IMG/VR virus record: IMGVR_UViG_3300031787_000001
Coordinates: 62,001-126,000 of that record
Direction: 5' to 3' (one strand)
Length of the DNA: 64,000 nt
In this document: one piece after another, positions 18,265 through 62,495 of the stretch
How positions within the stretch are numbered: position 1 is the stretch's first letter
How the letters are laid out: every line of letters starts with the position of its first letter
Made by a program: the position numbers and the translations under genes
Notes under the pieces: model-generated
What the model saw: only the letters and a program-made list of their open reading frames with translations
Databases searched by the model: none
What the model was told of the DNA's origin: nothing

Positions 18265-19323
18265 ATGAATAAAAATAAAGTACTTTTCATCTTAAAAAGA
18301 AAAAATAATTATGATGGAATAAAGGATTCACATGTCGGTATGAGTACCGGATTGTACAATTCGGCATCTTTTATGAACGATATGTTAAATGATTCAGGTA
18401 TTGAGTCCCATATTTCAGTCGTGATTGATAATAATTGTATTGATAGGGAAGTTACAAAATACAAACCAACACATGTTATTATTGAGGCACTTTGGGTTGT
18501 ACCGTCTAAATTTTATGTTCTATGTAAACTACACCCAAAGGTAAAATGGATAATTAGATTACATAGTGAAATACCATTTTTAGCAAATGAAGGTATGGCA
18601 TTAGATTGGTTGGGTGATTATATATTTTATGAAAATGTTTATATTGGGACAAATGCACCCAGAGCAACGAGAGAATTGAGAGATTTCATAAAACATAAAG
18701 TGAATTGGTCAAGTAAACAGATAAATGAAAAGATAATTTATCTTCCAAATTTTTATCCTCAAGAATATAAAATAAAAAAATACGATAGAAATAAAGATAC
18801 CATCGATATAGGTTGTTTTGGTGCAATTAGACCAATGAAAAACCATTTAATGCAAGCAATTGCGGCAGTTAAATTTGCTGAAAGTATAGGTAAAAAATTA
18901 AGATTTCATATAAATTCAGGTAGAGTTGAACAAAAAGGAGATGCAGTATATAATAATTTAAAAAGTTTTTTTGCACATTTATCCGATTCAGAACATCAAT
19001 TAATTAACCACTCTTGGGCACCGAGAGAAGATTTTTTGGAAATATGTGGTAAAATGGATATAGGTATGCAGGTTTCATTTTCAGAAACATTTAATATTGT
19101 TGCCGCGGATTTAGTTAGTCAGGGTGTCCCTGTAATTTCCTCGGATGAACTTCCTTGGATCAACCGTATTTTTACCGCAAAACCAACAGAAACAAGAGAT
19201 ATATATTTAAAATTATTGTTAACACATTTATTACCAAAGGTAAATTTGATAACAAACCAATATTTATTAAGGGGTTATACCAATAAGACACGTAAAATTT
19301 GGGTAAATTATTTTAAAAAATGA
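18265..19323 (+). CDS. GT-B fold glycosyltransferase-like protein
   Basis: GCFGAIRPMKN and SFSETFNIVAAD..GVPVI, GT4-type C-terminal motifs. Confidence 0.6.
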   Translation: MNKNKVLFILKRKNNYDGIKDSHVGMSTGLYNSASFMNDMLNDSGIESHISVVIDNNCIDREVTKYKPTHVIIEALWVVPSKFYVLCKLHPKVKWIIRLHSEIPFLANEGMALDWLGDYIFYENVYIGTNAPRATRELRDFIKHKVNWSSKQINEKIIYLPNFYPQEYKIKKYDRNKDTIDIGCFGAIRPMKNHLMQAIAAVKFAESIGKKLRFHINSGRVEQKGDAVYNNLKSFFAHLSDSEHQLINHSWAPREDFLEICGKMDIGMQVSFSETFNIVAADLVSQGVPVISSDELPWINRIFTAKPTETRDIYLKLLLTHLLPKVNLITNQYLLRGYTNKTRKIWVNYFKK

Positions 19324-19628
19324 CAAATAAAAAAGAAAAAAACAATAAAATGAAAAACTATTCAGGAAAAAAGAAAAAAGAAATTATAGAACACAAAACA
19401 AAAGAAAAAAATAAAGATTATTCTGTTATTATTTTTGATTGGGTTGATGGTGTTTTAGTAAAAACAGAAACATTTTTTAAAACAATAGAAGAAGCAAAAG
19501 AATTTGTTGAAACTAAAACAGGAGACATAAAAATATATAACATAGACAAACAAGTAATACATTCTGAAAAAAAAGAAAAGAAATATGCTAAAATAAAAAA
19601 TAAAGAAGATGACGATACTTACGCATAA
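19320..19628 (+). CDS. hypothetical basic protein
   Basis: 102 aa ORF. Confidence 0.5.
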   Translation: MTNKKEKNNKMKNYSGKKKKEIIEHKTKEKNKDYSVIIFDWVDGVLVKTETFFKTIEEAKEFVETKTGDIKIYNIDKQVIHSEKKEKKYAKIKNKEDDDTYA

Positions 19629-19682
19629 TTTTAATAATTAAATGTAACGTAAAAAAAAATCTCTTAAAATTTTAAGAGATTT

Positions 19683-19728
19683 TTTGTTTTAAGGAATATA
19701 TTGTTTATCTTTGTTTTGTTCTTTGACA
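19683..19728 (+). promoter_or_regulatory. Bacteroidota-type promoter followed by boxA-like element
   Basis: TTTG 19683-19686, 19 nt spacer, TATCTTTG 19706-19713, GTTCTTTGACA 19718-19728. Confidence 0.7.
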
Positions 19729-19743
19729 TTTTTGGAAATAGTT

Positions 19744-19832
19744 GCCCCGGTGGTGGAACAGGTAGACACGCAGGACTTAAAATCCTGTGGACCGAAACGT
19801 CCGTGCGGGTTCGATTCCCGCCTGGGGCACCA
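19744..19832 (+). tRNA. tRNA-Leu(UAA)
   Basis: cloverleaf, cagga-cttaaaa-tcctg, long variable arm, CCA encoded. Confidence 0.95.
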
Positions 19833-19869
19833 ATACTATCGTTCTTTGACATATAAGGAGAAACAAATT

Positions 19870-20235
19870 ATGGAAATACTTTTCTTTATTTTAGGAATTA
19901 CTTCCGTGGTGGTTATTGCGACCGCAATAGTTGCTGTGGTAAGTATTGTTAAGGTAACAAAGTTACAAACAAAAGTTAAAGATGGTTTTGATGGTGTTTA
20001 TCATTCAATTGATAATACACATACTTCCATCGATAACACAAAAAGAGATACTCACGATAACATCGGAAGATTAAATGAAGAAGTTAATCGTAGAGTTGAT
20101 AACCTCGAAAGAGAAACCTTCTCACAGTTAGATTCTCGATTAGATAAGTTGGAAACGAAGTTAAAAACTTACGTTCACACTAATGCAACCATGATGAAAC
20201 TTGCATTAGATACACATAAAGCAACATCAAAATAA
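19870..20235 (+). CDS. membrane-anchored coiled-coil protein
   Basis: ATG 19870 with AAGGAG at 19855-19860; N-terminal TM helix; flanked by 19-bp inverted repeat. Confidence 0.7.
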   Translation: MEILFFILGITSVVVIATAIVAVVSIVKVTKLQTKVKDGFDGVYHSIDNTHTSIDNTKRDTHDNIGRLNEEVNRRVDNLERETFSQLDSRLDKLETKLKTYVHTNATMMKLALDTHKATSK

Positions 20236-20391
20236 AATAAAAGTCAAAAGAACGATAGTATTAAGGTTGAACGGGGAATGAAGATTAAGACACCTGTTGG
20301 TGGTTGGTGATTATCTTCGGAGTTGGAACCAACATAGTAATGCCGTTCGTAAAAGAGGATGTCCACTCGACCATCTTCCTCTTTCCTTCTT

Positions 20392-20462
20392 GGTCTCATA
20401 GTTTAAGGGAAAAACGGTAGCCTTCTAAGCTTCTGATCCTAGTTCGAGTCTAGGTGAGACTA
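20392..20462 (+). tRNA. tRNA-Arg(UCU)
   Basis: ggtctca/tgagact acceptor, loop cttctaa. Confidence 0.85.
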
Positions 20463-20683
20463 CAAAGTTCCTGTAGGCCGCGGGATCGTAGTTCCTCTAT
20501 TCCACTGACAAAAGTCAAGAAAAGAGCCAGATCGTAAGCTGGATGGGTTGACAACTTTCCCACTGACTCGGAAAAAAGTTGTAAATTTTAAGCGGGTCCT
20601 CGCTTCCCACGGTTTAATAGTACAAGGATAATGAAGGGAATAATACGACCCCTAAGACCTGCTTTTATTAAAAAAAATAAAAT

Positions 20684-21115
20684 ATGAATTACAAATTAAA
20701 AGAAATGCCCGAAAAAGTATATTGGGCGGAAACAAAACAATTTACAGTTGAAAATGAAAATGGTGAAACATTTGATATTCGAATTGGTGAAAGTTCAAAA
20801 TTTACTGAATATTGGATTTGGAAAGATCCGGGTGGATGGGAAGAAATTGATGATGATGATCTTATGGAGTATATAAATGAACAATTTGCCGATGATGAAT
20901 GGGAATTTGAACTTTCTGCACAAAAAGAAAGAGAAGAAAAAATGGATAAAATTATTGATGAATATATTAAAGAAAATGGTGATCAAATAAAAATAGATGA
21001 ATTAGTGTCTAAAATAAGTAGAGAAAATCTATATCCACGAAATATCACATTTTACGAAGAGTTTTATCACAACTATCATTATGTCAATAAAAAAATAAAA
21101 CAACTTAATAAATAA
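20684..21115 (+). CDS. hypothetical acidic protein
   Basis: 143 aa ORF. Confidence 0.55.
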   Translation: MNYKLKEMPEKVYWAETKQFTVENENGETFDIRIGESSKFTEYWIWKDPGGWEEIDDDDLMEYINEQFADDEWEFELSAQKEREEKMDKIIDEYIKENGDQIKIDELVSKISRENLYPRNITFYEEFYHNYHYVNKKIKQLNK

Positions 21116-21117
21116 AA

Positions 21118-21321
21118 ATGGAAAATTATAGAAAAGTATTAATTTTTGTGATGTGTTTTTTGGTCACATTTATCGGTGGCATTATTGTTACAGAATTATC
21201 CGCCTATCTTTTAACTTTACCAAATACAATTGCAAATATTTTTGGTTATATCATTTTAATCACTACCTTTGTATTGATCCTCTTATTAGGACATAAATTA
21301 GTAAAATCTTTAAACAAATAA
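21118..21321 (+). CDS. small membrane protein (2 TM)
   Basis: two hydrophobic segments. Confidence 0.6.
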   Translation: MENYRKVLIFVMCFLVTFIGGIIVTELSAYLLTLPNTIANIFGYIILITTFVLILLLGHKLVKSLNK

Positions 21322-21332
21322 AAAAAACAGTT

Positions 21333-22277
21333 ATGATTGGAATTATCACATTTACCTTATCGGTAGTAGTATTAGGAATTTTATTCGGAGTATTTAACTT
21401 CAAAAATTATTTGTCAGAACCTGACAAGTACAATAATACAAAAATAAAAGCGAGTGCAGTTATTAAAGCGGTTGTTGTGTTTATTGTATCTATTATCTTG
21501 GCAATCATCAATCCAATTTCAGTTGAACGAATTGATGTTGGACACGTAGGATTAAAAATCAACAACACCGGAGATGAAAAAGGTATCAGTAAGACCACAT
21601 ATGTAACGGGTTGGGTGTTTTATAATAGTTGGTTATCTCGTATTAAGGAGTATCCCGTGACCCAACAACATGTAGATTACGAAGAAACCGCAATCATCAC
21701 AAAAGGTGGGTTCCAAGCGGTAATTAAACCAAGTTTTAACTGGTCTGTGAATCCATCCAATGCCGCTGATATGTATCAAAATCTCAGACAAGATGTTGAT
21801 CAGATTAAAGAAACTTGGTTGAAGAACGCTATTATAGGTGCCGTGAATGATGTTGCCAACTTATATAGTGTCGATTCAATTTTTAATCATCGAGCCGAAT
21901 TTGAATCTGACATTGTAAAAGAATGTAATTTAAGGGTTAGTAAATGGTTTAACGTATCTCAATTAAGAACAAATATTGTTCCTCCAAAAGAGATCACGGA
22001 AGCCATCAACCAAAAGACCAAGGCGGTTCAAGAAGCTCAAGCGGCTATCCAACAAAAGATCGTGGCCGAAGCTCAGGCTTTAACACAGATCGCAAAGGCA
22101 AAAGGTGATAGTGCTCAAGCGGTGATTGCAGCATCCGGTAGGGCTGAAGCGGTGAGAAAAGAACAACAATACTTAACACCGATGTATATTGAGTATATTA
22201 GAGCACAAAGATGGGATGGTAAGTATCCACAAACAATGCTCGGTTCTGGTGGAAATGTGTTGTTAAATTTGAAATAG
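21333..22277 (+). CDS. SPFH/band-7 (prohibitin-like) membrane protein
   Basis: two N-terminal TMs, RIDVGHVG, Ala-rich coiled coil, C-terminal WDGKYP. Confidence 0.85.
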   Translation: MIGIITFTLSVVVLGILFGVFNFKNYLSEPDKYNNTKIKASAVIKAVVVFIVSIILAIINPISVERIDVGHVGLKINNTGDEKGISKTTYVTGWVFYNSWLSRIKEYPVTQQHVDYEETAIITKGGFQAVIKPSFNWSVNPSNAADMYQNLRQDVDQIKETWLKNAIIGAVNDVANLYSVDSIFNHRAEFESDIVKECNLRVSKWFNVSQLRTNIVPPKEITEAINQKTKAVQEAQAAIQQKIVAEAQALTQIAKAKGDSAQAVIAASGRAEAVRKEQQYLTPMYIEYIRAQRWDGKYPQTMLGSGGNVLLNLK

Positions 22278-22284
22278 AATATTA

Positions 22285-22487
22285 AGTCAGGTGGCGGAAT
22301 AGAATGTAATGATGATTTGGACGATTAGTCGACACGTAATCACGTGACTATTTCTATCCTTATCAGATGTTGAATCATCGAATCTTACATTCTTTGGTAG
22401 ACGATAATCACGGAAACCTAATGAGGTAGAGAACGCAAGTGAGAGGTATCTGCGGATACCGTACGGGTTCGAATCCTGTCCTGACTA
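22285..22487 (+). ncRNA. tRNA-Leu-like RNA with ~93 nt D-loop hairpin insertion and remodelled anticodon arm
   Basis: acceptor agtcagg/cctgact; D motif tggcggaat...tggtagacg split by agaatgtaa...ttacattct; T arm acggg-ttcgaat-cctgt. Confidence 0.7.
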
Positions 22488-22501
22488 CAATTTTGATATT
22501 T

Positions 22502-23062
22502 ATGGGAATGTTAAGAAAAATAAAATATTGGTTTGAATACGAAGGAAGATATCTTCACAAAGATTTTATTAAAGGTGTAAAAAATCTGTGGAAATGGTTT
22601 CCAACTATTTGGAAAGATAGAGAACATGACTATCATTTTATTTTAGTTCTTCTTGAAAAGAAACTTAATTTTCAATCAAAATATATTGGTTATAAAAATA
22701 GACATTCAGAAGCAACTAGAGATTCTGAACGTATGATGACATGTGTTCGTCTTATACAAAAAATAAAAGAAGATTACTATAATACGGAATATGTGGATTA
22801 TCAAAAAAGTGAATTTCATTTTGATCCCATTCCCGATAGACCTACCCACAAACAACTTCGTATTGAGGAAATTTCAGATAATTTTGATGATTATTTTAAA
22901 ATATATCCTCGTATCTATAAAAAAGTTTTTAATGAACTTGATGTGGATCAAAGAAACTCAAAAAGAATTATTGCTATTCGTATGAGTTGGGAAAATCACA
23001 ACAGAGCAAAAAAACTTTTATTTAAAATGATGGAAAATCATATCGAGTCTTGGTGGGATTGA
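22502..23062 (+). CDS. hypothetical protein
   Basis: Trp-rich ORF (NLWKWFPTIWKDR...ESWWD); start moved to ATG 22502 after the tRNA-like RNA. Confidence 0.65.
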   Translation: MGMLRKIKYWFEYEGRYLHKDFIKGVKNLWKWFPTIWKDREHDYHFILVLLEKKLNFQSKYIGYKNRHSEATRDSERMMTCVRLIQKIKEDYYNTEYVDYQKSEFHFDPIPDRPTHKQLRIEEISDNFDDYFKIYPRIYKKVFNELDVDQRNSKRIIAIRMSWENHNRAKKLLFKMMENHIESWWD

Positions 23063-23099
23063 TTTTTTTTCTTATATTATATAAAATAAAACATAAATT

Positions 23100-23345
23100 A
23101 TGAAATGTATCAAATCAATTAAGTCAACTAAAAACACCGAAATCGGGGTAATTAAAAGAATTGACGACAAAGAAGCAGAATCAATGGTTAAATCAGGTTA
23201 TTGGAAATATGTTCCTAAATCTGAATTTAAAATTAAAAAAGTAAAAGAAGATGAAACATTAAGGGAACAATATCCCGCCAATGTTGAAGGATCAAAAGAA
23301 TTTAACAAGGCAAATAAAAAAAATAATAAAAAAGTTTCGAAATAA
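23100..23345 (+). CDS. hypothetical basic protein
   Basis: 81 aa ORF. Confidence 0.55.
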   Translation: MKCIKSIKSTKNTEIGVIKRIDDKEAESMVKSGYWKYVPKSEFKIKKVKEDETLREQYPANVEGSKEFNKANKKNNKKVSK

Positions 23346-23394
23346 TTTTTTTATTATTTCAAATTTACATATATTTGCATATATTTATAAGACA

Positions 23395-23487
23395 ATGACA
23401 AACTTGTTTAACATACTAACGATAGAGAATACACCAAATAATGGTGGTGGGTATGATGTGCCAGTATACAAACAAGTTCGGAGTTAA
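23395..23487 (+). CDS. leader peptide 1 (30 aa, MTNLFNILTIENTPNNGGGYDVPVYKQVRS) of tRNA array 1
   Basis: codons 6-25 all read by array-1 tRNAs; preceded by TATATTTG (23370-23377) and TATTTATA (23382-23389); followed by terminator. Confidence 0.8.
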   Translation: MTNLFNILTIENTPNNGGGYDVPVYKQVRS

Positions 23488-23547
23488 AAAAATTTATTAA
23501 AACAAAATAAACATAAACCCGAACACAAAAAGTTCGGGTTTTTTTTG
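23401..23547 (+). promoter_or_regulatory. attenuator 1 (1:2, antiterminator and terminator helices)
   Basis: aacttgttt (23401-09) pairs aaacaagtt (23470-78); gttcggagtt (23476-85) pairs aacccgaac (23516-24); terminator aaacccgaac/gttcgggttt plus U-run. Confidence 0.8.
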
Positions 23548-23568
23548 TTAATAGATCTTTGAAATAAT

Positions 23569-23642
23569 CGGGATGTAGTTCAGTCCGGTAGAATGCTTGG
23601 TTTGGGACCAAGATGTCGTAGGTTCGAATCCTGCCATCCCGA
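23569..23642 (+). tRNA. tRNA-Pro(UGG)
   Basis: cttgg-tttggga-ccaag. Confidence 0.93.
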
Positions 23643-23648
23643 CATAAT

Positions 23649-23720
23649 GTCTTCTTAGCTCAACGGTAGAGCAATTGGCTGTTAACCAATAGGTTTTAGG
23701 TTCGAATCCTAAAGAGGACG
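23649..23720 (+). tRNA. tRNA-Asn(GUU)
   Basis: attgg-ctgttaa-ccaat. Confidence 0.93.
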
Positions 23721-23725
23721 CAATC

Positions 23726-23807
23726 GCCCCGATGGTGGAATTGGTAGTCACGGCAGACTTAGGATCTGTTGCCTTATGGTGTGAGAGTTCGAGTCTCTCT
23801 TGGGGTA
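23726..23807 (+). tRNA. tRNA-Leu(UAG)
   Basis: gcaga-cttagga-tctgt, variable arm. Confidence 0.92.
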
Positions 23808-23816
23808 CATTAAATT

Positions 23817-23889
23817 GGCCGATTAGTTCAGCAGGTTAGAATGCGTGACTTGTAATCATGAGACGACAGTTCGATTCTGTCATTGGCCT
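23817..23889 (+). tRNA. tRNA-Thr(UGU)
   Basis: cgtga-cttgtaa-tcatg. Confidence 0.9.
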
Positions 23890-23894
23890 CATAA

Positions 23895-23968
23895 GCGGAT
23901 TTCGCCTAGTTGGCATGGCACCACACTTCCACTGTGGAATAGGGTCGGTTCGAGACCGTCAATCCGCT
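23895..23968 (+). tRNA. tRNA-Gly(UCC)
   Basis: ccaca-cttccac-tgtgg, U73. Confidence 0.88.
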
Positions 23969-24014
23969 CAGAATTTTTTTTATTCAAATATATTTTGTAT
24001 GTTTGAATTTGTAA

Positions 24015-24097
24015 GGTGTAGTTGAGCAATTGGTTGGCTCGCCGGACTGTAAATCCGGTCCCTTCGGGGCTTGTAGGTTCGAGTCCTACCTACACCA
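24015..24097 (+). tRNA. tRNA-Tyr(GUA)
   Basis: ccgga-ctgtaaa-tccgg, variable arm. Confidence 0.92.
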
Positions 24098-24103
24098 CAA
24101 ATT

Positions 24104-24175
24104 GCCGCTGTCGTCTAACGGTTAGGACGCGTCCCTTTCACGGACAAAATGCGAGTTCGATTCTCGTCGGTGGTA
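24104..24175 (+). tRNA. tRNA-Glu(UUC)
   Basis: gtcc-ctttcac-ggac. Confidence 0.9.
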
Positions 24176-24180
24176 CGATT

Positions 24181-24252
24181 GGTCTCATAGTTAATCGGCT
24201 ATAATATTGCCCTGTCACGGCAAAGTGCCGGGTTCGATTCCCGGTGGGACCG
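24181..24252 (+). tRNA. tRNA-Asp(GUC)
   Basis: ttgcc-ctgtcac-ggcaa. Confidence 0.92.
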
Positions 24253-24301
24253 CAAACTTCAGGAGTAATTAACCTGAAGATGGAAGGTTCGAAACTTTCG
24301 A

Positions 24302-24403
24302 TTGGCTATGGTGTAATGGGCACACTGGTCCCGTGATTGGCTCGGTTATCGTCGAGTTTCAGTCGGGACCGGGGGATTCAGGTTCAATTCCTGATTGGTC
24401 AGC
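24302..24403 (+). ncRNA. tRNA-like RNA with anticodon arm extended into a long hairpin
   Basis: D arm gtgt/acac; stem ggtccc/gggacc enclosing ~32 nt hairpin; T arm tcagg-ttcaatt-cctga. Confidence 0.6.
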
Positions 24404-24408
24404 AAAAT

Positions 24409-24482
24409 GGACCCTTAGCTCAGTAGGTTAGAGCAAATGACTCATAATCATTAGGTGCACGGTTCGAGCCCGTGAGGGTCCA
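24409..24482 (+). tRNA. tRNA(CAU), most likely Ile2 (lysidine, reads AUA)
   Basis: aatga-ctcataa-tcatt; GGACCCU acceptor resembles Ile2; leader 1 uses ATA codons. Confidence 0.8.
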
Positions 24483-24487
24483 CATTT

Positions 24488-24559
24488 AGTCCTTTAGCTT
24501 AGTGGGAAAGCGGTTGTCTTACATGCAACATAGAGTGTGTTCGATTCACACAGGGACTA
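24488..24559 (+). tRNA. tRNA-Val(UAC)
   Basis: gttgt-cttacat-gcaac. Confidence 0.88.
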
Positions 24560-24667
24560 CCCCCGATATGTATGTGTAAGCAAGAAGCATATCATCAGTT
24601 GGGATCTTACAGTCCACGAACTGGGGTCCGGTGGGAACCGGGATGAGAGTACCCGAACCTCTCAAAC

Positions 24668-24739
24668 GCAGATATAGCACAATGGTTAGTGTTCGGCCTT
24701 GCCAAGGCTGAGATGCCAGTTCGAATCTGACTATCTGCT
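24668..24739 (+). tRNA. tRNA-Gly(GCC)
   Basis: cggcc-ttgccaa-ggctg. Confidence 0.9.
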
Positions 24740-24744
24740 CAAAT

Positions 24745-24894
24745 TGTACTGTGGTGAAATTGGCAGACACCCCCACTCGTCTCGTGGGCGTCGACAACGA
24801 AATAGGTAAATGGATAAGGGTTGACCACAAGCTAGCTAGCATATTTGTCCTTTACCGAATCGCGACATAGACGGTTCGAATCCTCTCGGTACAG
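24745..24894 (+). ncRNA. tRNA-like RNA with Leu-type D arm and ~80 nt variable-arm hairpin
   Basis: acceptor tgtactg/cggtaca; D arm ggtgaaattggcagacac; arm cccac-tcgtctc-gtggg lacking U33; T loop ttcgaat. Confidence 0.65.
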
Positions 24895-24923
24895 CATATA
24901 TTTTTGACAAATAAAAATAGTTT

Positions 24924-25163
24924 ATGACGATCTTAATCGGCATCAATGAATTAGAAGAAGAATTTCAAATACCGTGGAAGATGGGATTAGTTAATCATTT
25001 GGTCATTGATTACGCAGACAACGCAATCTATGGTACATTTGAGAAAAAAGAAGTAATTATTTTTAGGTTCAAAAAATATGGTTGGGTTTGTGATAATAGA
25101 TACAATTTATACACACTATCAAGTGGTGAGGCAGGTATCATGATTAACATGAATTCAACATAA
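24924..25163 (+). CDS. hypothetical protein
   Basis: 79 aa ORF between tRNA arrays. Confidence 0.5.
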   Translation: MTILIGINELEEEFQIPWKMGLVNHLVIDYADNAIYGTFEKKEVIIFRFKKYGWVCDNRYNLYTLSSGEAGIMINMNST

Positions 25164-25187
25164 AATATTTATTAATAACAACATGTT

Positions 25188-25649
25188 ATGAGAAAATTTA
25201 AAACATTATTCGGAATTGAGATTGATAATCTTGCTGAATATATTAAAGAATATATTTCAACAAGAGAAAATGTGGAGATATTAGTTGGCGCCGATTCTCA
25301 AAATTATAGTAATAGAAAAACTATATATGGAGTTGTTATTGCCTTATACACAAAAGGTAAAGGTGCACATGTTTTGTGTTCAAGAGATACTGTTCCAATT
25401 GAGAGAAACACATCAACCAGATTACTTACTGAAGTTTGGAAATCAATTGAGACCGCAGAATTTTTAAAAGAAAATGGTTTACCAAAACCATTATGGATTG
25501 ATATTGACTTAAATCCTGATCCGAAATTTAAATCAAATACCGTATTAAGACAAGCGGTTGGTCTTGTTGAAGGTATGGGTTATCAAGTTAGATATAAACA
25601 ATTAGGTGCTATGGTAACATACGCCGCAAATCACTTAGTTAGAAATTAA
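25188..25649 (+). CDS. RNase H-like YkuK (DUF458) family protein
   Basis: LVGADSQ, RLLTEVWKSIE, IDIDLN, YAANHL. Confidence 0.75.
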   Translation: MRKFKTLFGIEIDNLAEYIKEYISTRENVEILVGADSQNYSNRKTIYGVVIALYTKGKGAHVLCSRDTVPIERNTSTRLLTEVWKSIETAEFLKENGLPKPLWIDIDLNPDPKFKSNTVLRQAVGLVEGMGYQVRYKQLGAMVTYAANHLVRN

Positions 25650-25661
25650 ATTATACTTTTC

Positions 25662-25692
25662 TTTGTTTTTACAATATTTATTATTATCTTTG
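25662..25692 (+). promoter_or_regulatory. Bacteroidota-type promoter for leader 2/array 2
   Basis: TTTG 25662-25665, 19 nt, TATCTTTG 25685-25692. Confidence 0.72.
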
Positions 25693-25714
25693 TAAAACAA
25701 AAGATTAAAAAAAT

Positions 25715-25878
25715 AAATTCGATGAAACAGTTCAAACATATTATGTCGTTTATTAGTTGTTCAAAATGGGCAAGTCAGCGTCATATCCGTATGTCCCGAT
25801 CTGTTTGTATGAATTTGTGTTAAAATATTTTAATAAGTAATTCAAAAAAACCTCGGGACAAAATCTCGAGGTTTTTTG
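25715..25878 (+). promoter_or_regulatory. attenuator 2 (antiterminator/terminator)
   Basis: tgtcccga (25792-99) is the exact complement of tcgggaca (25853-60); terminator cctcggga/tctcgagg plus U6; aaacag (25725-30) pairs ctgttt (25801-06) and aaattc (25715-20) pairs gaattt (25811-16). Confidence 0.82.
25722..25823 (+). CDS. leader peptide 2 (33 aa, MKQFKHIMSFISCSKWASQRHIRMSRSVCMNLC) of tRNA array 2
   Basis: codons 1-27 all fall in codon families read by array-2 tRNAs; not in ORF track because <60 aa. Confidence 0.82.
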   Translation: MKQFKHIMSFISCSKWASQRHIRMSRSVCMNLC

Positions 25879-25884
25879 TTTTAT

Positions 25885-25957
25885 GGGCTGTCATGTTCCA
25901 AGGCTGGCGAAGGACCCTTGCAAGGTCTTTGGGAGATTTCGATTATCTCACGGTCCA
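25885..25957 (+). tRNA. tRNA-Ala(UGC), atypical D arm
   Basis: G3.U70 acceptor, ggacc-cttgcaa-ggtct. Confidence 0.85.
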
Positions 25958-25963
25958 CATAAT

Positions 25964-26037
25964 GTTCGGGTAGATCAATTGGTGAGATCATTCGCCTGAT
26001 ACGCGAAAGGTTGTAGGTTCGAGTCCTACTCCGAACA
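25964..26037 (+). tRNA. tRNA-Ile(GAU)
   Basis: ttcgc-ctgatac-gcgaa. Confidence 0.92.
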
Positions 26038-26042
26038 CGAAT

Positions 26043-26115
26043 GGTACACAAGCTAACTTAGTAGAAGCATTGGACTGAAAATCCAAGGGACTTGGAGCGT
26101 AACCAAGGTGTACCA
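26043..26115 (+). tRNA. tRNA-Phe(GAA), non-canonical D and T loops
   Basis: ttgga-ctgaaaa-tccaa; T loop agcgtaa. Confidence 0.8.
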
Positions 26116-26124
26116 CAAACATAT

Positions 26125-26198
26125 TCCCTCGTAACTCAATTGGCTAGAGTACCACACTTTTAATGTGGGAGTTTCGAGTTCGAATCTCGACGGGGGAA
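26125..26198 (+). tRNA. tRNA-Lys(UUU)
   Basis: ccaca-cttttaa-tgtgg. Confidence 0.92.
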
Positions 26199-26202
26199 CA
26201 AT

Positions 26203-26274
26203 GGTCGGATGGCCGAGTGGATTAGGTGGAGGTCTGCAAAACCTCTTACGTCAGTTCGATTCTGACTCCGACCT
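26203..26274 (+). tRNA. tRNA-Cys(GCA)
   Basis: gaggt-ctgcaaa-acctc, U73. Confidence 0.93.
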
Positions 26275-26281
26275 CAAATAC

Positions 26282-26354
26282 ACGGGTGTGGTGAAATTGG
26301 TTATCATTTCGGTCTCCAAAACCGACGTTTCAGATTCGAATTCTGACATCCGTG
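26282..26354 (+). tRNA. tRNA-Trp(CCA)
   Basis: tcggt-ctccaaa-accga. Confidence 0.92.
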
Positions 26355-26358
26355 CAAT

Positions 26359-26431
26359 GGTTCTATGGTGTAATGGATTAGCACACGAAGCTACGGACTT
26401 CGGAGTTTGGGTTCGAGTCCTAATAGAACCA
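26359..26431 (+). tRNA. tRNA-Arg(ACG)
   Basis: cgaag-ctacgga-cttcg. Confidence 0.9.
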
Positions 26432-26436
26432 CATAT

Positions 26437-26508
26437 TGTTCCGTGATGTAATGGTTAGCATACAAGAATTTGACTCTTGTAGTATAGGTTCGAGTCCTAT
26501 CGGAACAT
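26437..26508 (+). tRNA. tRNA-Gln(UUG)
   Basis: caaga-atttgac-tcttg, U1-A72. Confidence 0.88.
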
Positions 26509-26514
26509 CATAAA

Positions 26515-26597
26515 GGAGAGGTCGTATAGTGGTTTAGTACAGTAGTCTTGAAAACTACCGAGTTTAGGCTCCGTGGGTTCGAATCCCACCCTCTCCG
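26515..26597 (+). tRNA. tRNA-Ser(UGA)
   Basis: gtagt-cttgaaa-actac, variable arm, G73. Confidence 0.92.
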
Positions 26598-26602
26598 CAT
26601 AT

Positions 26603-26680
26603 GGTGGCCTGAGATGGGTTGGTTACATCGTCAGATTGTGGCTCTGAAGAACACGGGTTCGACTCCCGTAGGTCACACCA
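26603..26680 (+). tRNA. tRNA-His(GUG)
   Basis: tcaga-ttgtggc-tctga, G-1, CCA encoded. Confidence 0.88.
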
Positions 26681-26683
26681 AAA

Positions 26684-26772
26684 GGAGAGTAAACTACGAC
26701 GGTGAGTAGACATGCCTGCTAAGCATTGTGTTCGTTAATTCGGATGAGGTTCGATCCCTCTACTCTCCGCCA
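26684..26772 (+). tRNA. tRNA-Ser(GCU)
   Basis: loop ctgctaa, variable arm, GCCA end. Confidence 0.85.
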
Positions 26773-26775
26773 AAT

Positions 26776-26848
26776 GCCGTGGGTTAGTGGAATACGACTA
26801 TCTCTCATAAGGATGGAGAACACAGTTCGAACCTGTGCTACGGTACCA
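26776..26848 (+). tRNA. tRNA-Met(CAU), elongator, atypical D arm
   Basis: tatct-ctcataa-ggatg, T arm cacag/ctgtg, CCA. Confidence 0.7.
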
Positions 26849-26868
26849 AAAAAAAGTTTTAAAAAGAT

Positions 26869-27162
26869 TTTGTATTTTAAAAAAGTATTTATATCTTTGT
26901 AAAAGTTCTTTAAACATCGTGGCGTGGAGAAGTGGTATCTCACTAGGCTCATAACCTAGGGACCGTTGGTTCGAATCCAACCGCCGCAACAAAAAAGTTT
27001 TAAAAAGATTTTGTTTTTTGAAAAACTCTTTTTATATTTGTAAAACAATTCGGTAATACACACCGAAAAAGTTCTTAAAAAAAAAGTTTGACAAAAATTT
27101 GGAAAGTTGAAAAACACTTCTTATCTTTGTAAAACAATCGGAAACGATAAAGTTCTTTGAAA
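26869..27162 (+). promoter_or_regulatory. three tandem, mutually similar Bacteroidota-type promoters with boxA-like elements
   Basis: TTTG/TAnnTTTG pairs at 26869/26892, 27010/27033, 27098/27122; GTTCTTTRAA at 26905 and 27152. Confidence 0.75.
26918..26989 (+). tRNA. initiator tRNA-fMet(CAU)
   Basis: C1:A72 mismatch, ctagg-ctcataa-cctag. Confidence 0.88.
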
Positions 27163-27164
27163 AT

Positions 27165-27965
27165 ATTGGGCGGTCTATAGTCCATAAAATAAACCATGAA
27201 AGTGGTATAAAGTGGAATACCTTGGTTTTGGTATTCTGCGGCTTGGGTAACCGAGCTCGAGTAGACAAACGAGATATCGTCTGACCTTTAGTACTGAGGG
27301 TAACACTGTAGGGAAAGTGGTTGGGCGATCAAGCGATGTGGGTCGTTTGGTTGAGGTGGGAACACCAATAAGAATAACTCGTAGAATTATTGCAAGAAAT
27401 GTTGTTATCCGACTTCATAATTGCGTTTTTCAATATTATGGTTGTCTTAAAACCGAAAGGTATGTTAGTGTACAGGTGGTGCTGTTATTAACCTTAACCT
27501 TAGCCTACCAAGGCATGAGTTATGAAGATGAGCAAAAATATGGAGGTGGGGACATCTCAGAGGGTAGTTTAGTATTTAGCCGTTCAAAAGATGGCTGAGC
27601 TGGTGACGAACCACTACCTTCACAATCCACAAACCAATAACTTGCATCCATTTAATTGCAAAATTAATAAATCAAGGAAAAGTGTTCGTCAGTTGTGGAT
27701 GACAGGTCACTACATAGTCATGAGTTGTTCATGGCCATGAAGGGTCCCAAGCCCAACATGATTTTCACCAAAGTTCTCTAATCTCGCAAGGATTAATTGG
27801 GGTGGCAACCTCGAAGAGTGATGAGTAATGAGAGAGTGATTCACAACTTAAGGATTGGTTAATCTAATTGACCGTGACTGATTATTACTACTCAAAAGGT
27901 AGTGGATAAGGGAAGAATCAATAATGTCCCAAAGATAATCACCCGAACGTGTAATCTCAGCGTTT
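27165..27965 (+). ncRNA. ~800 nt structured RNA, probably GOLLD
   Basis: ORF-poor, GC-elevated, many hairpins (e.g. gaatacc/ggtattc, gcttgg/ccgagc, ttagccgtt/gatggctga, ctact/agtag); size and tRNA-cluster/phage context fit GOLLD; family assignment not verified. Confidence 0.6.
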
Positions 27966-28031
27966 TATTTTCCTGATTTTTATAAAATCATGGTGGTGGA
28001 GTAATAAAAAGATTTCATGCCGCAAGGCCCC

Positions 28032-28059
28032 AAAGGTTAGATTTTTCTAACCTTTTTTT
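28032..28059 (+). terminator. intrinsic terminator after large RNA
   Basis: aaaggttaga-tttt-tctaaccttttttt. Confidence 0.75.
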
Positions 28060-28091
28060 GTTTTTATATTTTTTTTATTTATATTATACCT

Positions 28092-28844
28092 ATGAGATTA
28101 ATTTGTATATCAGACACACATTCTTTACATGAAAGAATGACACATAAAGTTGAAAAATATATCGATCCTGATCAAGACAATATACTCATCCATGCGGGGG
28201 ATTGTACTAATATGGGTAGAGAACCTGAAATTATTGAATTTGTTTATTGGTATCAAAATTTAAAAGGATTTGATACCAAGATCTTTATTGCGGGTAATCA
28301 TGATTTTGGTTTTGAACATTATAATGGTCTTCGTCATAGTAATGAGGCACCTTGGTTACATCATATAATAAATGAGGAGAATTTATCTCAATCAGATGTC
28401 GTTTATCTTCATGATTCTGAATTTGTAATTGAACATCCGAAATTTTCAAGACCAATTAAATTTTATGGAAGTCCTTGGCAACCTGAATTTTATAATTGGG
28501 CATTTAATCTTCCAAGAAATGGTTGGGAGTTAGAACTTAAATGGAAAGAAATACCAGATGATACTGATATATTGATCACACACGGACCTCCACATGGTTG
28601 TAGAGATTTTACACCACAAAATTTACAAGTTGGTTGTGAATTGTTGAGATATAGATTAGATACATTAAAACCACTTGTCCATGTGTTTGGACATATTCAT
28701 CATGCATATGGTGGTGCATATATTGATGATGTTTTATACATTAACGCATCAACATGTACAGAAAGATATGTCCCACGTAATAGACCTATTGTTGTTGATT
28801 TAAAAGAAGAAGATGGTAAAATAGTTACTACCTATATTGATTAA
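28092..28844 (+). CDS. calcineurin-like metallophosphoesterase
   Basis: DTH, HAGD, GNHD, THGPP, GHIH motifs. Confidence 0.9.
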   Translation: MRLICISDTHSLHERMTHKVEKYIDPDQDNILIHAGDCTNMGREPEIIEFVYWYQNLKGFDTKIFIAGNHDFGFEHYNGLRHSNEAPWLHHIINEENLSQSDVVYLHDSEFVIEHPKFSRPIKFYGSPWQPEFYNWAFNLPRNGWELELKWKEIPDDTDILITHGPPHGCRDFTPQNLQVGCELLRYRLDTLKPLVHVFGHIHHAYGGAYIDDVLYINASTCTERYVPRNRPIVVDLKEEDGKIVTTYID

Positions 28845-61535: not shown

Positions 61536-62495
61536 TTAAGCAACCATGTTACTTATTTTTCTACCTCCCTGTGCGATCAAACTATTACCACTATTTATTC
61601 TGTGACTTACTGCGGATTTAGTTAAATAAACAGGATCTAAATTACCATTTGCAACTTGTAAATTTATTTTTTTTGCAAATTTTTGAAACCAACCCGGTCC
61701 ATTCCAAACACCATAAACAAAATGGAACATTAACGGTGGTGTTGAATTAACTATCTGAATTGCTTTTGGTGATAAATATGATTTACAGTATTGGTCATAC
61801 AATGGTTTCATCATTTTAGGTATTAAAGACATTAATTGAGATTGTAACGGTCCACCGAAATAATTCCATTTCCATTTATTTTTTGCGTTCTGACCATCAA
61901 TTATTGACCAAAACTGTTTACCGGCAGACGTTGTATTGATACTACCTCCCGTTTTTCTATCTATACCAAACATGGTTTCACCCGAACCTGCATATCTTTG
62001 GTCTTTTACTCTACCATCTTTTAACATGTTAGGATGATAATATCCACCCTCAAGTTCTTGTACTACTTTTTGTACAATACCATCAAAATCTGTGGGTATA
62101 TTTTTAAATTTTCCCGAACTAAGTTTTTGAGATCTTGATTTTATTCTCCAATCATCTTTCTCATTTATCTTCTCAATTTCTTCTTTAAGGTATTTTTTTA
62201 TTATATTTTCTAATCTTAGCTCGTTCATTTTTTTTGAATTTTTTATTTTAATTGTACCTATTGATTTTGGAAAAAACTCAGTAGTATCCACGTCATCACC
62301 ATATTTGTTAATTAAAAAAATACCAGTTTTTAATTCACCAATATCCTCTATCCTATAAATTTTATTTTCTTCAACATCAACACCTTCTTTTTGTGGGTAT
62401 CCCACGTATTTTTCATCACCGTTTGAATATATTGGAATTTCATATCCTTTGTATGAAATTTTATCTATTTTTTTAAATTTTGGTTTAAAGAACAT
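61536..62495 (-). CDS. protein with GH108-like lysozyme domain
   Basis: LEGGYYHP...GETMFGID; start placed at ATG 62495. Confidence 0.5.
   Translation of the reverse strand: MFFKPKFKKIDKISYKGYEIPIYSNGDEKYVGYPQKEGVDVEENKIYRIEDIGELKTGIFLINKYGDDVDTTEFFPKSIGTIKIKNSKKMNELRLENIIKKYLKEEIEKINEKDDWRIKSRSQKLSSGKFKNIPTDFDGIVQKVVQELEGGYYHPNMLKDGRVKDQRYAGSGETMFGIDRKTGGSINTTSAGKQFWSIIDGQNAKNKWKWNYFGGPLQSQLMSLIPKMMKPLYDQYCKSYLSPKAIQIVNSTPPLMFHFVYGVWNGPGWFQKFAKKINLQVANGNLDPVYLTKSAVSHRINSGNSLIAQGGRKISNMVA

Follow-up and report, generated by a model that had tools for sequence, protein, structure and literature searches.

The window analyzed here is a 64,000-nucleotide stretch of IMG/VR virus record IMGVR_UViG_3300031787_000001 (positions 62,001 to 126,000 of that record). 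It contains two arrays of phage tRNA genes on the same strand, and each is preceded by a small open reading frame and an intrinsic terminator (Table 1). Leader ORF 1 translates to MTNLFNILTIENTPNNGGGYDVPVYKQVRS*. A sequence-only reading of this region had described its codons, proposed trp-style alternative helices and located the codons that array 1 does not serve in the pairing segments. We found that the codons, helices and coordinates it gave are all correct, and its observation is confirmed.

Table 1. Features of the two leader-array units in the window
Feature	Position	Strand	Description and basis
Promoter-like box 1	23370-23377	+	-7 box TATATTTG (Bacteroidota type, TAnnTTTG), 17 nt upstream of the leader ATG; promoter function inferred
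Leader ORF 1	23395-23487	+	30 codons plus stop; codons 2-23 form the sensing part; homologous ORFs in 22 relatives
Segment 1	23401-23417	+	aacttgttt (23401-23409) plus atact (23413-23417)
Segment 2, part pairing with segment 1	23463-23478	+	agtat ... aaacaagtt (aaacaagtt at 23470-23478)
Antiterminator strand 1	23476-23485	+	gttcgg-a-gtt; copy of the terminator 3' arm inside the last ORF codons, ending at the first base of the TAA stop codon (23485); GTTCGG invariant in 22 type-1 leaders
Segment 3, terminator 5' arm	23515-23524	+	AAACCCGAAC; contains aac-ccgaac (23516-23524)
Segment 4, terminator 3' arm and T tract	23532-23549	+	GTTCGGGTTT (23532-23541), then the T run; 10-bp G+C-rich stem with 5 G-C pairs, 7-nt loop, -14.0 kcal/mol; 20 nt upstream of tRNA-Pro
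Post-terminator motif	23555-23565	+	ATCTTTGAAAT, degenerate copy of the GTTCTTTGACAT motif that follows these terminators in relatives; could be a second promoter or a processing signal
tRNA array 1	23569-24740	+	Pro-TGG, Asn-GTT, Leu-TAG, Thr-TGT, Gly-TCC, Tyr-GTA, Glu-TTC, Asp-GTC, CAT (Ile2-like), Val-TAC, Gly-GCC (ARAGORN and Rfam)
Internal promoter-like box	23998-24005	+	TATGTTTG, 9 nt upstream of tRNA-Tyr
Promoter-like box 2	25685-25692	+	TATCTTTG
Leader ORF 2	25722-25823	+	MKQFKHIMSFISCSKWASQRHIRMSRSVCMNLC*
Antiterminator strand 2	25793-25799	+	GTCCCGA; pairs with TCGGGAC at 25853-25859
Terminator 2	25845-25877	+	14 pairs, followed by a T run; -17.9 kcal/mol
tRNA array 2	25885-26848	+	Ala-TGC, Ile-GAT, Phe, Lys, Cys, Trp, Arg-ACG, Gln, Ser-TGA, His, Ser-GCT, Met-CAT (a relaxed ARAGORN run adds Ala, Ser-GCT and CAT; BLAST hits to annotated tRNA-Ala genes)

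The assignment of the CAT tRNA in array 1 as Ile2-like rests on C4-G69 and C5-G68 read by eye and on classification by similarity. This classification is rough; it supports an Ile2-like tRNA in type-1 units and Met-type tRNAs in type-2 units, but is not decisive. In an Rfam scan of 18500-28500 at E-values up to 1, nothing reached the gathering score of any family other than tRNA and GOLLD. The only leader-family hits were Thr_leader, Leu_leader and His_leader at 26, 25 and 28.1 bits, against gathering scores of 55, 50 and 49, with E-values of 0.1-0.3. These hits cover the terminator region only and were rejected as evidence of membership, and the element is not a sequence member of these families. 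No T-box match was listed in the scan.

A sigma-70 promoter scan gave no more hits than in shuffled sequence, and the Bacteroidota TAnnTTTG box fits better. Such a motif lies 17-31 nt upstream of the ATG in 28 of 41 related leaders. In the window, TATMTTTG on the + strand clusters in the tRNA region, at 19706, 23370, 25685, 26892, 27033 and 27122. We also considered TATAYTTAT as a phage promoter; it occurs 15 times against 7.6 expected and was not pursued. TTCTTTGACAT was rejected as a general promoter, since it has only two exact copies in the window, flanking tRNA-Leu-TAA, and is unexplained.

Codon content of the leaders and of their arrays

Of the first 22 codons after the ATG in leader 1, 20 are read by array-1 tRNAs, against a background of 0.44 (P = 7.5e-6), and all 11 tRNA species of the array are represented (P = 1.5e-4). 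In leader 2, 22 of 22 sensing codons are read by array 2 (P below 2.5e-6) and 12 of 12 species are represented (P = 2.5e-6). These probabilities were obtained by simulation, in addition to binomial tests. The best of 276 other small ORFs in the window reaches 0.68 on-list codons and covers 9 species. With strict wobble rules, the codons in leader 1 that are not read by array 1 are TTG, TTT, AAA, CAA, GTT, CGG and AGT, and all of them lie in segments 1 and 2.

Comparative data carry most of the weight. We examined 41 non-redundant leader/array pairs from related jumbo phages (individual rows are labelled L006, L007 and so on). Duplicate loci were left out, as were weak hairpins with stems of 8-9 bp and no ORF of at least 25 aa, and rows L063, L065 and L066, in which the ORF overlaps a terminator upstream of a lone Met-CAT tRNA. 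The leaders fall into about three homologous families, so the counts are not phylogenetically independent. Some small arrays in relatives have no detectable leader.

The two leaders in the window split the code as their arrays do. The fraction of codons read by the leader's own array versus the other array is 0.76 versus 0.21 for leader 1 and 0.84 versus 0.12 for leader 2. In 8 genomes with two leaders, 16 of 16 comparisons favour the own array, with a mean difference of 0.46. Shuffling arrays among the 41 leaders gave 0.549 +/- 0.020, against 0.722 observed, and none of 5000 shuffles reached the observed value.

Leader content also co-evolves with the arrays within leader families. When a tRNA is in the unit, its residue is in the sensing part in 263 of 264 cases; when the tRNA is absent, the residue is present in 74 of 203 cases. 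Leader 2 in the window has no T, E or D, and array 2 has no Thr, Glu or Asp tRNA. The L007 leader has T, E and D and its unit has those tRNAs, while L006 has T only, in both. Arrays holding Val give AEVADI in the leader where others have ADER, and the Phe/His/Ser arrays of L055, L056 and L061 have leaders without L, Y, T or R. The match extends beyond amino-acid identity to codon class for Arg and Ser. In units that hold only one of the two isoacceptor classes, the matching class outnumbers the other by 28 to 6 for Arg and by 37 to 9 for Ser. However, Leu codon classes match only weakly (11 versus 7), and Gly codon classes do not match the arrays (10 versus 17). The signal is seen only in the ORF frame: the own-minus-cross difference is 0.46 in frame 0, -0.03 in frame +1 and -0.17 in frame +2. 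The synonymous share of single-base codon differences is 0.43-0.48 in frame 0 and 0.16-0.27 in the other frames. Both results support translation of the ORF.

The same design is present in LR756502.1, an unannotated 642-kb GenBank phage outside the 80 IMG/VR loci. Four arrays in this record each follow an ORF plus terminator, for example an Arg/Ser array behind a leader containing TSSRSRSSKS. Each leader is enriched for its own array's residues, and the own-versus-cross matrix is diagonal apart from one tie. BLAST of both leader regions of the window against 50,697 GenBank phages found nothing for the leaders. The nearest cultured phage, Flavobacterium phage immuto, has only a small tRNA cluster, and we saw no leader-terminator unit upstream of it.

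Alternative RNA helices

The full-length minimum free energy fold contains helix 1:2 (9 bp plus 5 bp) and the terminator, whereas RNA ending at 23526 folds into helix 2:3. Energies are -18.8 kcal/mol for the 1:2 domain and -9.1 kcal/mol for the 2:3 domain, which, with that of the terminator hairpin, are in the same range as the E. coli trp leader. Nine terminator arm classes each have a cognate antiterminator copy near the 3' end of the ORF, ending a median of 17 nt before the end of the ORF. Cognate duplexes average -13.0 kcal/mol, against -6.8 for non-cognate pairs and -6.6 for shuffled tails. On-list codons make up 80% of those upstream of the antiterminator, against 47% from the antiterminator to the stop (Fisher P = 6e-27).

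Helix 1:2 shows covariation. In a 22-sequence alignment, 7 of 13 pairs show compensatory changes, 77.5% of cells are paired, against 20-38% when the partner is slid, and the covariation score exceeds all 500 shuffles. The helix is also stronger in cognate than in permuted pairings (-6.99 versus -4.85 +/- 0.29 kcal/mol, reached by none of 5000 permutations). In a trp-style switch, helices 1:2 and 2:3 should exclude each other. In this window they share only 3 nt and are only partly exclusive; in untranslated nascent RNA the state with the antiterminator is -22.8 kcal/mol and the state without it is -21.0 (pair probabilities 0.56-0.98). With a difference of 1.8 kcal/mol, slightly in favour of the antiterminator, the folds do not settle whether the two helices are mutually exclusive, and termination in the absence of translation is not established. 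Helix 1:2 itself is real and shows covariation.

Constrained folding with ribosome footprints masked had been proposed with the sequence-only reading, which would have failed if the antiterminator were not competitive. At equilibrium the full-length RNA folds into the terminator whatever mask is applied, and this analysis cannot discriminate between states; the switch must therefore be kinetic, as in classical attenuators. In folds of nascent RNA, the masked ribosome leaves the antiterminator free for A-site codons 4-22 and blocks it from codon 26 onward, matching the window of codons 6 to about 22 that had been suggested. In leader 1 the antiterminator strand lies within the footprint of a ribosome at the stop codon. 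In leader 2 and most relatives it ends 11-21 nt upstream of the stop codon, which in leader 2 and many of these relatives is at or just behind the trailing edge of a terminating ribosome, and a simple 30-nt mask at the stop codon of leader 2 leaves it free. Masking would then need a ribosome still on the tail, steric exclusion, or a following ribosome. Taken together, the trp-style interpretation of the sequence-only reading is supported, and its elements have independent comparative support.

A leader-peptide attenuator as the likely explanation

The data are best explained by a ribosome-mediated transcription attenuator that gates read-through from a host-type promoter into the tRNA array and senses the tRNAs it controls. 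We consider this explanation likely. In this model the leader ORF acts as a roll-call, because its first 22 or so codons include at least one codon for every tRNA species encoded downstream and almost nothing else. If any of those tRNAs is scarce, the leading ribosome would stall inside the sensing part and leave the antiterminator strand uncovered. This strand would pair with the 5' arm of the terminator as that arm emerges, and RNA polymerase would run on into the array. If all those tRNAs are plentiful, the ribosome would reach the tail and stop codon and cover the antiterminator, so that the terminator hairpin forms and transcription stops. Helix 1:2 would weaken the antiterminator on untranslated RNA and may also act as a pause hairpin. 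The result would be negative feedback that supplies phage tRNAs on demand. The sequence elements, their statistics, their covariation and the frame-specific coding constraint come directly from our analysis, while the promoter, transcription-translation coupling (assumed for the presumed Bacteroidota host), the direction of the switch and the physiological signal are inferred; nothing has been tested experimentally, and there are no data on transcript ends, ribosome footprints or termination. In 13 of 41 cases only 8-14 nt separate the T run from the first tRNA, leaving no room for a separate promoter.

Transcription of the array mainly from internal promoters had also been named in advance as an outcome that would contradict the model. 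The box upstream of tRNA-Tyr, pointed out by the sequence-only reading as a possible promoter for the distal half of the array, is plausible; it is absent from the corresponding spacers of relatives and, among the relatives examined, is found only in this lineage. A GATCTTTGAAAT motif lies between the terminator and tRNA-Pro and could be a weak extra promoter. In about half of the type-1 relatives, TATATTTG plus GTTCTTTGACAT lies in the 60-70 nt gap after the terminator. Our data do not establish whether these motifs, or the post-terminator motif in Table 1, function as promoters.

Among other explanations, the attenuator may be real but read general translation capacity or amino-acid starvation, through any slowdown of the pioneer ribosome, rather than the supply of the array's own tRNA species, with the codon match simply reflecting the phage's preferred codons. 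A stall at a hungry codon cannot tell an uncharged tRNA from a missing one, and leaders of complete arrays (L059 and L073) contain all 20 amino acids and would respond to any shortage. We consider this unlikely, because where arrays are split each leader is restricted to its own array's codons and avoids those of the other array in the same genome, and leader content changes when tRNAs move between units. A general sensor would not need this partition. It is less likely still that the ORF encodes a functional micro-protein with its own terminator and that the array is transcribed separately from downstream promoters. The ORF is conserved with a synonymous excess, and promoter-like motifs follow the terminator in many type-1 relatives and precede tRNA-Tyr. 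However, the peptide sequence is poorly conserved except through amino-acid content that tracks the array, codon class matters for Arg and Ser, the 3' tail is constrained as RNA, because the antiterminator co-varies with the terminator, and in 13 of 41 cases only 8-14 nt separate the terminator from the first tRNA. A translation-independent RNA switch, in which tRNAs bind codon-like triplets directly as in a T-box or a protein binds and the ORF is incidental, is improbable; alternative helices with covariation can also serve riboswitches and protein-dependent attenuators, but the array match and the synonymous excess are confined to the ORF frame, and nothing in this region reached the gathering score of any Rfam family other than tRNA and GOLLD. 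That the hairpin is simply the terminator of the 81-aa gene at 23100-23345, whose stop codon lies about 170 nt upstream, with the ORF and codon match arising by chance, is very unlikely given chance probabilities of 1e-4 to 1e-6 per leader and the occurrence of the same design twice in the window, in 41 non-redundant relatives and in a separate GenBank phage record.

The leader-peptide attenuators of amino-acid biosynthetic operons (E. coli trpL, hisL, leuL, thrL, pheL and ilvL) share with the proposed phage attenuator a short ORF just downstream of the promoter, regulatory codons cognate to what the operon supplies, an intrinsic terminator upstream of the regulated genes, an antiterminator sharing the terminator's 5' arm, a 1:2 helix spanning the ORF, and a switch decided by ribosome position. 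In the phage element the regulated products are tRNAs instead of enzymes. Instead of a run of codons for one amino acid, the leader holds one to a few codons for each of 10-26 tRNA species and therefore behaves like an OR gate, and the antiterminator strand lies inside the ORF, upstream of the stop codon rather than downstream of it. The pheST attenuator and T-box leaders also tie expression of a component of the translation apparatus to the status of the cognate tRNA through premature termination. The pheST attenuator senses one amino acid through a Phe-codon leader, and T-boxes bind one uncharged tRNA directly without translation; the element proposed here is read by a ribosome, covers many tRNA species and controls the tRNA genes themselves. 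Phage tRNA arrays have been discussed as compensation for codon-usage mismatch or for host tRNA depletion and cleavage, for example in T4- and T5-like phages and in recent work on PARIS, retron and PrrC defences. The phage studied here also has a large tRNA set, next to a GOLLD RNA as described for other phages. As far as we could find, those systems have no reported demand-sensing control, and full-text literature searches found no report of leader peptides or attenuators upstream of phage tRNA genes.

A more tentative possibility, which the data do not exclude, is that the roll-call leaders are an inducible counter-defence. When a host anticodon nuclease or another tRNA-depleting immune system removes a tRNA species during infection, ribosomes would stall on the matching codon of the leader, and the phage would switch on transcription of its replacement tRNA set. 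Leaders that contain all 20 amino acids would make this a general surveillance device for the whole tRNA pool.

Leader-peptide attenuation is a textbook mechanism, but it is known for amino-acid biosynthesis operons and a few synthetase or resistance genes. If our explanation is confirmed, the same logic would control tRNA genes, and the signal would be the supply of the very tRNAs being made, about the most direct feedback loop possible in translation. One short reading frame would sense 10-26 tRNA species at once. The element also gives an annotation rule, because leader content predicts which tRNAs belong to one transcription unit, and it could serve as a compact natural sensor of tRNA availability for synthetic biology. 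It would show that large phages regulate their tRNA arrays by demand, which bears on why phages carry tRNAs at all: codon-usage matching, replacement of degraded host tRNAs, or escape from tRNA-targeting defences.

Two tRNA arrays with leader ORFs and terminators

The region carries two large tRNA arrays. Array 1 holds Pro-TGG, Asn-GTT, Leu-TAG, Thr-TGT, Gly-TCC, Tyr-GTA, Glu-TTC, Asp-GTC, a CAT tRNA, Val-TAC and Gly-GCC. In array 2, a relaxed ARAGORN run added three tRNAs missed by the default run, namely Ala-TGC, Ser-GCT and a CAT tRNA, the first of which is supported by BLAST hits to annotated tRNA-Ala genes. Array 2 is therefore Ala, Ile-GAT, Phe, Lys, Cys, Trp, Arg-ACG, Gln, Ser-TGA, His, Ser-GCT and Met. 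The window is identical, over the locus compared, to a 286.8-kb IMG/VR contig (L002; L numbers denote the loci compared). The nearest cultured relative is a Flavobacterium phage, and it is distant. The TAnnTTTG boxes fit a Bacteroidota host.

Features of the tRNA region, with positions in the window
Feature	Position	Strand
Exact TTCTTTGACAT repeats flanking tRNA-Leu-TAA	19719-19729 and 19842-19852
G+C-richer stretches without a long ORF, flanking tRNA-Arg-TCT	20236-20391 and 20464-20683
Hairpin GGATGTCCACTCGACCATCTTCC	about 20358-20380
Leader ORF 1	23395-23487
Second small ORF (MVVGMMCQYTNKFGVKKIY), overlapping leader 1 in another frame	23441-23500
tRNA array 1	23569-24740	+
Stretches inside or just downstream of array 1 with no ORF and no standard tRNA call	24254-24408, 24563-24667 and 24741-24900
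Odd 95-nt tRNA called by the relaxed ARAGORN run	24309-24403
RNaseH_like protein, 153 aa (PF04308, E = 2e-17)	25188-25649
TATCTTTG box upstream of leader ORF 2	25685-92
Leader ORF 2	25722-25823
Terminator 2	25845-25877
tRNA array 2	begins at 25885	+
tRNA-Ala-TGC (array 2)	25885-25958
tRNA-Ser-GCT (array 2)	26684-26772
CAT tRNA (array 2)	26776-26848
Three tandem promoter-like repeats, aaaaagttttaaaaagattttgt ... TATMTTTGTAAAAC	26850-27135 (boxes at 26892, 27033 and 27122)
Initiator-like tRNA with a C1xA72 mismatch	26918-26990
GOLLD RNA	27560-27963 (probably from about 27140)

The observation made in the sequence-only reading holds: leader ORF 1 has exactly the codons listed there, and the four pairing segments lie where that reading placed them. 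The terminator is a 10-bp stem with 5 G-C pairs, a 7-nt loop and a T run. With strict wobble rules, the codons not read by array 1 are TTG, TTT, AAA, CAA, GTT, CGG and AGT, and all of them lie in segments 1 and 2. The CAT tRNA of array 1 has C4-G69 and C5-G68, as tRNA-Ile2 does; this is our reading of the sequence, supported by a rough classification by similarity. Leader 1 has two ATA codons and no internal ATG. The second small ORF that overlaps leader 1 recurs in relatives as MVMGMVCNRY... Its ATG codons arise from the AAT-GGT and TAT-GGT codon pairs of the leader, so it is probably a by-product.

The codon match of leader 1 is more than chance. Against background codon usage from 42 long ORFs of the window, 20 of the first 22 codons are on-list (P = 7.5e-6) and all 11 tRNA species are represented (P = 1.5e-4). 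The best of 276 other small ORFs in the window reaches 0.68 on-list and covers 9 species.

A second attenuator of the same layout lies upstream of array 2, where the box, the ORF and the terminator are followed about 10 nt later by tRNA-Ala. The peptide is MKQFKHIMSFISCSKWASQRHIRMSRSVCMNLC. All of its first 22 codons are read by array 2 (0 of 400,000 simulations), and all 12 species are represented (P = 2.5e-6). It has three internal ATG codons and no ATA, matching the Met-type CAT tRNA of array 2. The two leaders divide the genetic code as their arrays do: the fraction of codons read by the own array versus the other array is 0.76 vs 0.21 for leader 1 and 0.84 vs 0.12 for leader 2.

Other elements surround the arrays. 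Of the three stretches in or near array 1 without a standard tRNA call, the last has a tRNA-like acceptor stem and T arm, read by eye, around an insertion of about 80 nt. These stretches may be tRNAs with insertions or other structured RNAs. The hairpin near tRNA-Arg-TCT recurs in a tRNA spacer of L023. Of the three tandem promoter-like repeats, the first is followed by the initiator-like tRNA and the third lies upstream of the GOLLD region; what follows the second was not examined. The GOLLD RNA, which scores 338 bits in Rfam, lies just downstream of the tRNA arrays, behind a TATCTTTG box (the third repeat). The 420 nt upstream of the Rfam match have no long ORF and may be its variable 5' half.

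Leader content and array content in related phages

We used the RNaseH-like gene between the arrays as an anchor and retrieved 80 related IMG/VR loci. This gene is conserved next to the tRNA arrays in all 80 and might take part in tRNA or RNA processing. The tRNA arrays of these loci are extensively reshuffled. A search blind to composition was made for a strong hairpin plus T run within 330 nt upstream of a tRNA, with an ORF of at least 25 aa ending just upstream of the hairpin. It gave 41 non-redundant leader/array pairs, which fall into about three homologous families; because the families are few, the counts are not phylogenetically independent. Some small arrays in relatives have no detectable leader. 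Loci L024, L025, L035, L045, L050, L051, L055 and L064 carry a tRNA with a CUA anticodon, labelled 'Pyl' by ARAGORN. It is a candidate amber suppressor and may indicate TAG recoding in part of this phage clade; none was found in the window.

Leader content tracks the array. In 8 genomes with two leaders, all 16 own-versus-cross comparisons favour the own array, with a mean difference of 0.46. Permuting arrays among leaders gives 0.549 +/- 0.020, against 0.722 observed, and none of 5000 permutations reached the observed value. Across all 41 pairs, Trp is in 17 of 18 leaders whose unit has tRNA-Trp and in 0 of 23 others; the counts are 18 of 18 vs 1 of 23 for Ala, 21 of 21 vs 3 of 20 for His, and 31 of 31 vs 2 of 10 for Pro. 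Within families and over the sensing part only, a tRNA in the unit means its residue is in the leader in 263 of 264 cases, whereas an absent tRNA goes with a present residue in 74 of 203 cases. Separate co-changes were also seen. T, E and D differ among the window, L006 and L007, in both leaders and units, and V and T appear in L036 and L044, in both. L055, L056 and L061 form an F/H/S-rich group that lacks L, Y, T and R. The window's leader 1 gained E and D and lost AGA; its array holds Glu and Asp, while Arg-TCT and Leu-TAA lie elsewhere (19744 and 20392). The leaders of complete arrays contain all 20 amino acids (for example L059 and L073).

The ORF is read as codons. The signal exists only in frame 0, where the own-minus-cross difference is 0.46, against -0.03 and -0.17 in the other frames. 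The synonymous share of single-base codon differences is 0.43-0.48 in frame 0 and 0.16-0.27 in the other frames. For units that hold only one isoacceptor class, the matching codon class dominates for Arg (28 vs 6) and Ser (37 vs 9), is weak for Leu (11 vs 7) and fails for Gly (10 vs 17). The point made in the sequence-only reading, that off-list codons sit in the helices, holds generally: 80% of codons upstream of the antiterminator are on-list, against 47% from the antiterminator to the stop (P = 6e-27).

The design is replicated in a GenBank record outside the IMG/VR set. LR756502.1 (365000-410000 examined as L083) is an uncultured 642-kb phage, found through a tRNA-Ala hit, whose record has no annotation at all. 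Its tRNAs are grouped by amino acid, often with several copies (for example Lys x3, Ser x4, Leu x6). Four of its five arrays have matching leader peptides and the fifth has no leader. Each leader is followed by a terminator, and by eye each carries an antiterminator-like copy of it. The own-versus-cross matrix is diagonal apart from one tie: 0.52, 0.43, 0.21 (tied with the next unit downstream) and 0.31.

Arrays of LR756502.1 and the leader upstream of each
Array	Leader upstream
Phe, His, Trp, Lys	MRTINKHKHFSKLNKWFSNHRFEAKAFC
Arg, Ser	MKTTIKNTSSRSRSSKSGEVRLYS
Glu, Tyr	MNRFTNIETIGYTGYEGAYSELLVRPLSML
Ile-TAT, Gly, Ala	MKNLHNISVGVIAIGAGSVCLWLNYVS

Alternative RNA helices

The full-length MFE of leader 1 contains helix 1:2 (9 bp plus 5 bp) and the terminator, and RNA ending before the terminator's 3' arm folds into helix 2:3. 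Energies are -18.8 kcal/mol for the 1:2 domain, -9.1 for the 2:3 domain and -14.0 for the terminator. Every leader carries, near its 3' end, a copy of its own terminator's 3' arm. Nine different arm sequences each have a cognate antiterminator; examples are GTTCGG/CCGAAC, GTCCCGA/TCGGGAC, CAGTTAGAGG/CCTCTAACTG, AGTTAAGGG/CCCTTAACT, CCAGGGC/GCCCTGG and GATTGGGCTTAC/GTAAGCCCGGTT. Cognate duplexes average -13.0 kcal/mol, against -6.8 for non-cognate pairs and -6.6 for shuffled tails.

Helix 1:2 was examined in an alignment of 22 sequences of the type-1 family. In it, 77.5% of cells are paired, against 20-38% when the partner is slid, and 7 of 13 pairs show compensatory changes. The covariation score is 0.283, against 0.139 +/- 0.017 in shuffles, and none of 500 shuffles reached it. 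Cognate segment pairs are more stable than permuted ones (-6.99 vs -4.85 +/- 0.29 kcal/mol).

Folding with the ribosome footprint masked had been proposed in advance as a check on the switch. With a 30-nt footprint on nascent RNA, the antiterminator of leader 1 forms for A-site codons 4-22, is half lost at codon 24, and is gone from codon 26 to the stop. However, helices 1:2 and 2:3 share only 3 nt in the window, and untranslated nascent RNA still slightly favours the antiterminator (-22.8 vs -21.0 kcal/mol). In leader 2 and most relatives, the antiterminator ends a median of 17 nt before the end of the ORF. This places it at the trailing edge of a terminating ribosome, and a simple mask at the stop codon leaves it free.

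Known attenuators and the proposed mechanism

The element would work like trp-, his-, leu- and thr-type attenuators, although it is not a sequence member of those Rfam families. It differs from them in that the regulated genes are tRNA genes, the sensing region holds many codon species rather than a run of one, the antiterminator lies inside the ORF, and the element is in a phage. Full-text literature searches, which did not extend to papers in subscription journals, found no report of leader peptides or attenuators upstream of phage tRNA genes or of tRNA operons.

Our data support the trp-style interpretation given in the sequence-only reading. The only reading under which the switch regulates anything is the classical one. 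A stall in the sensing part would leave the antiterminator free, and polymerase would read through. A ribosome on the tail or at the stop codon would cover the antiterminator, and the terminator would form. The sequence elements, their match to the arrays and their covariation come from the analysis, whereas the action of the switch is inferred from them, nothing having been tested experimentally. Additional promoters are also possible. Type-1 relatives often carry TATATTTG plus a conserved GTTCTTTGACAT motif between the terminator and the first tRNA, and the window has GATCTTTGAAAT there. The motif of the exact repeats that flank tRNA-Leu-TAA is the same (GTTCTTTGACAT..TGG); after many attenuator terminators in relatives (in L005-L064 and in L082) it lies 15-25 nt upstream of the first tRNA, whatever that tRNA is. 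It could be a promoter element, a processing signal or a recombination scar. TATGTTTG upstream of tRNA-Tyr, which the sequence-only reading had suggested as an internal promoter, looks like a promoter and, among the relatives examined, is found only in this lineage. In 13 of 41 cases, only 8-14 nt separate the T run from the first tRNA, which leaves no room for a promoter there. Because the operon's products are the tRNAs being sensed, the mechanism would be negative feedback on tRNA supply.
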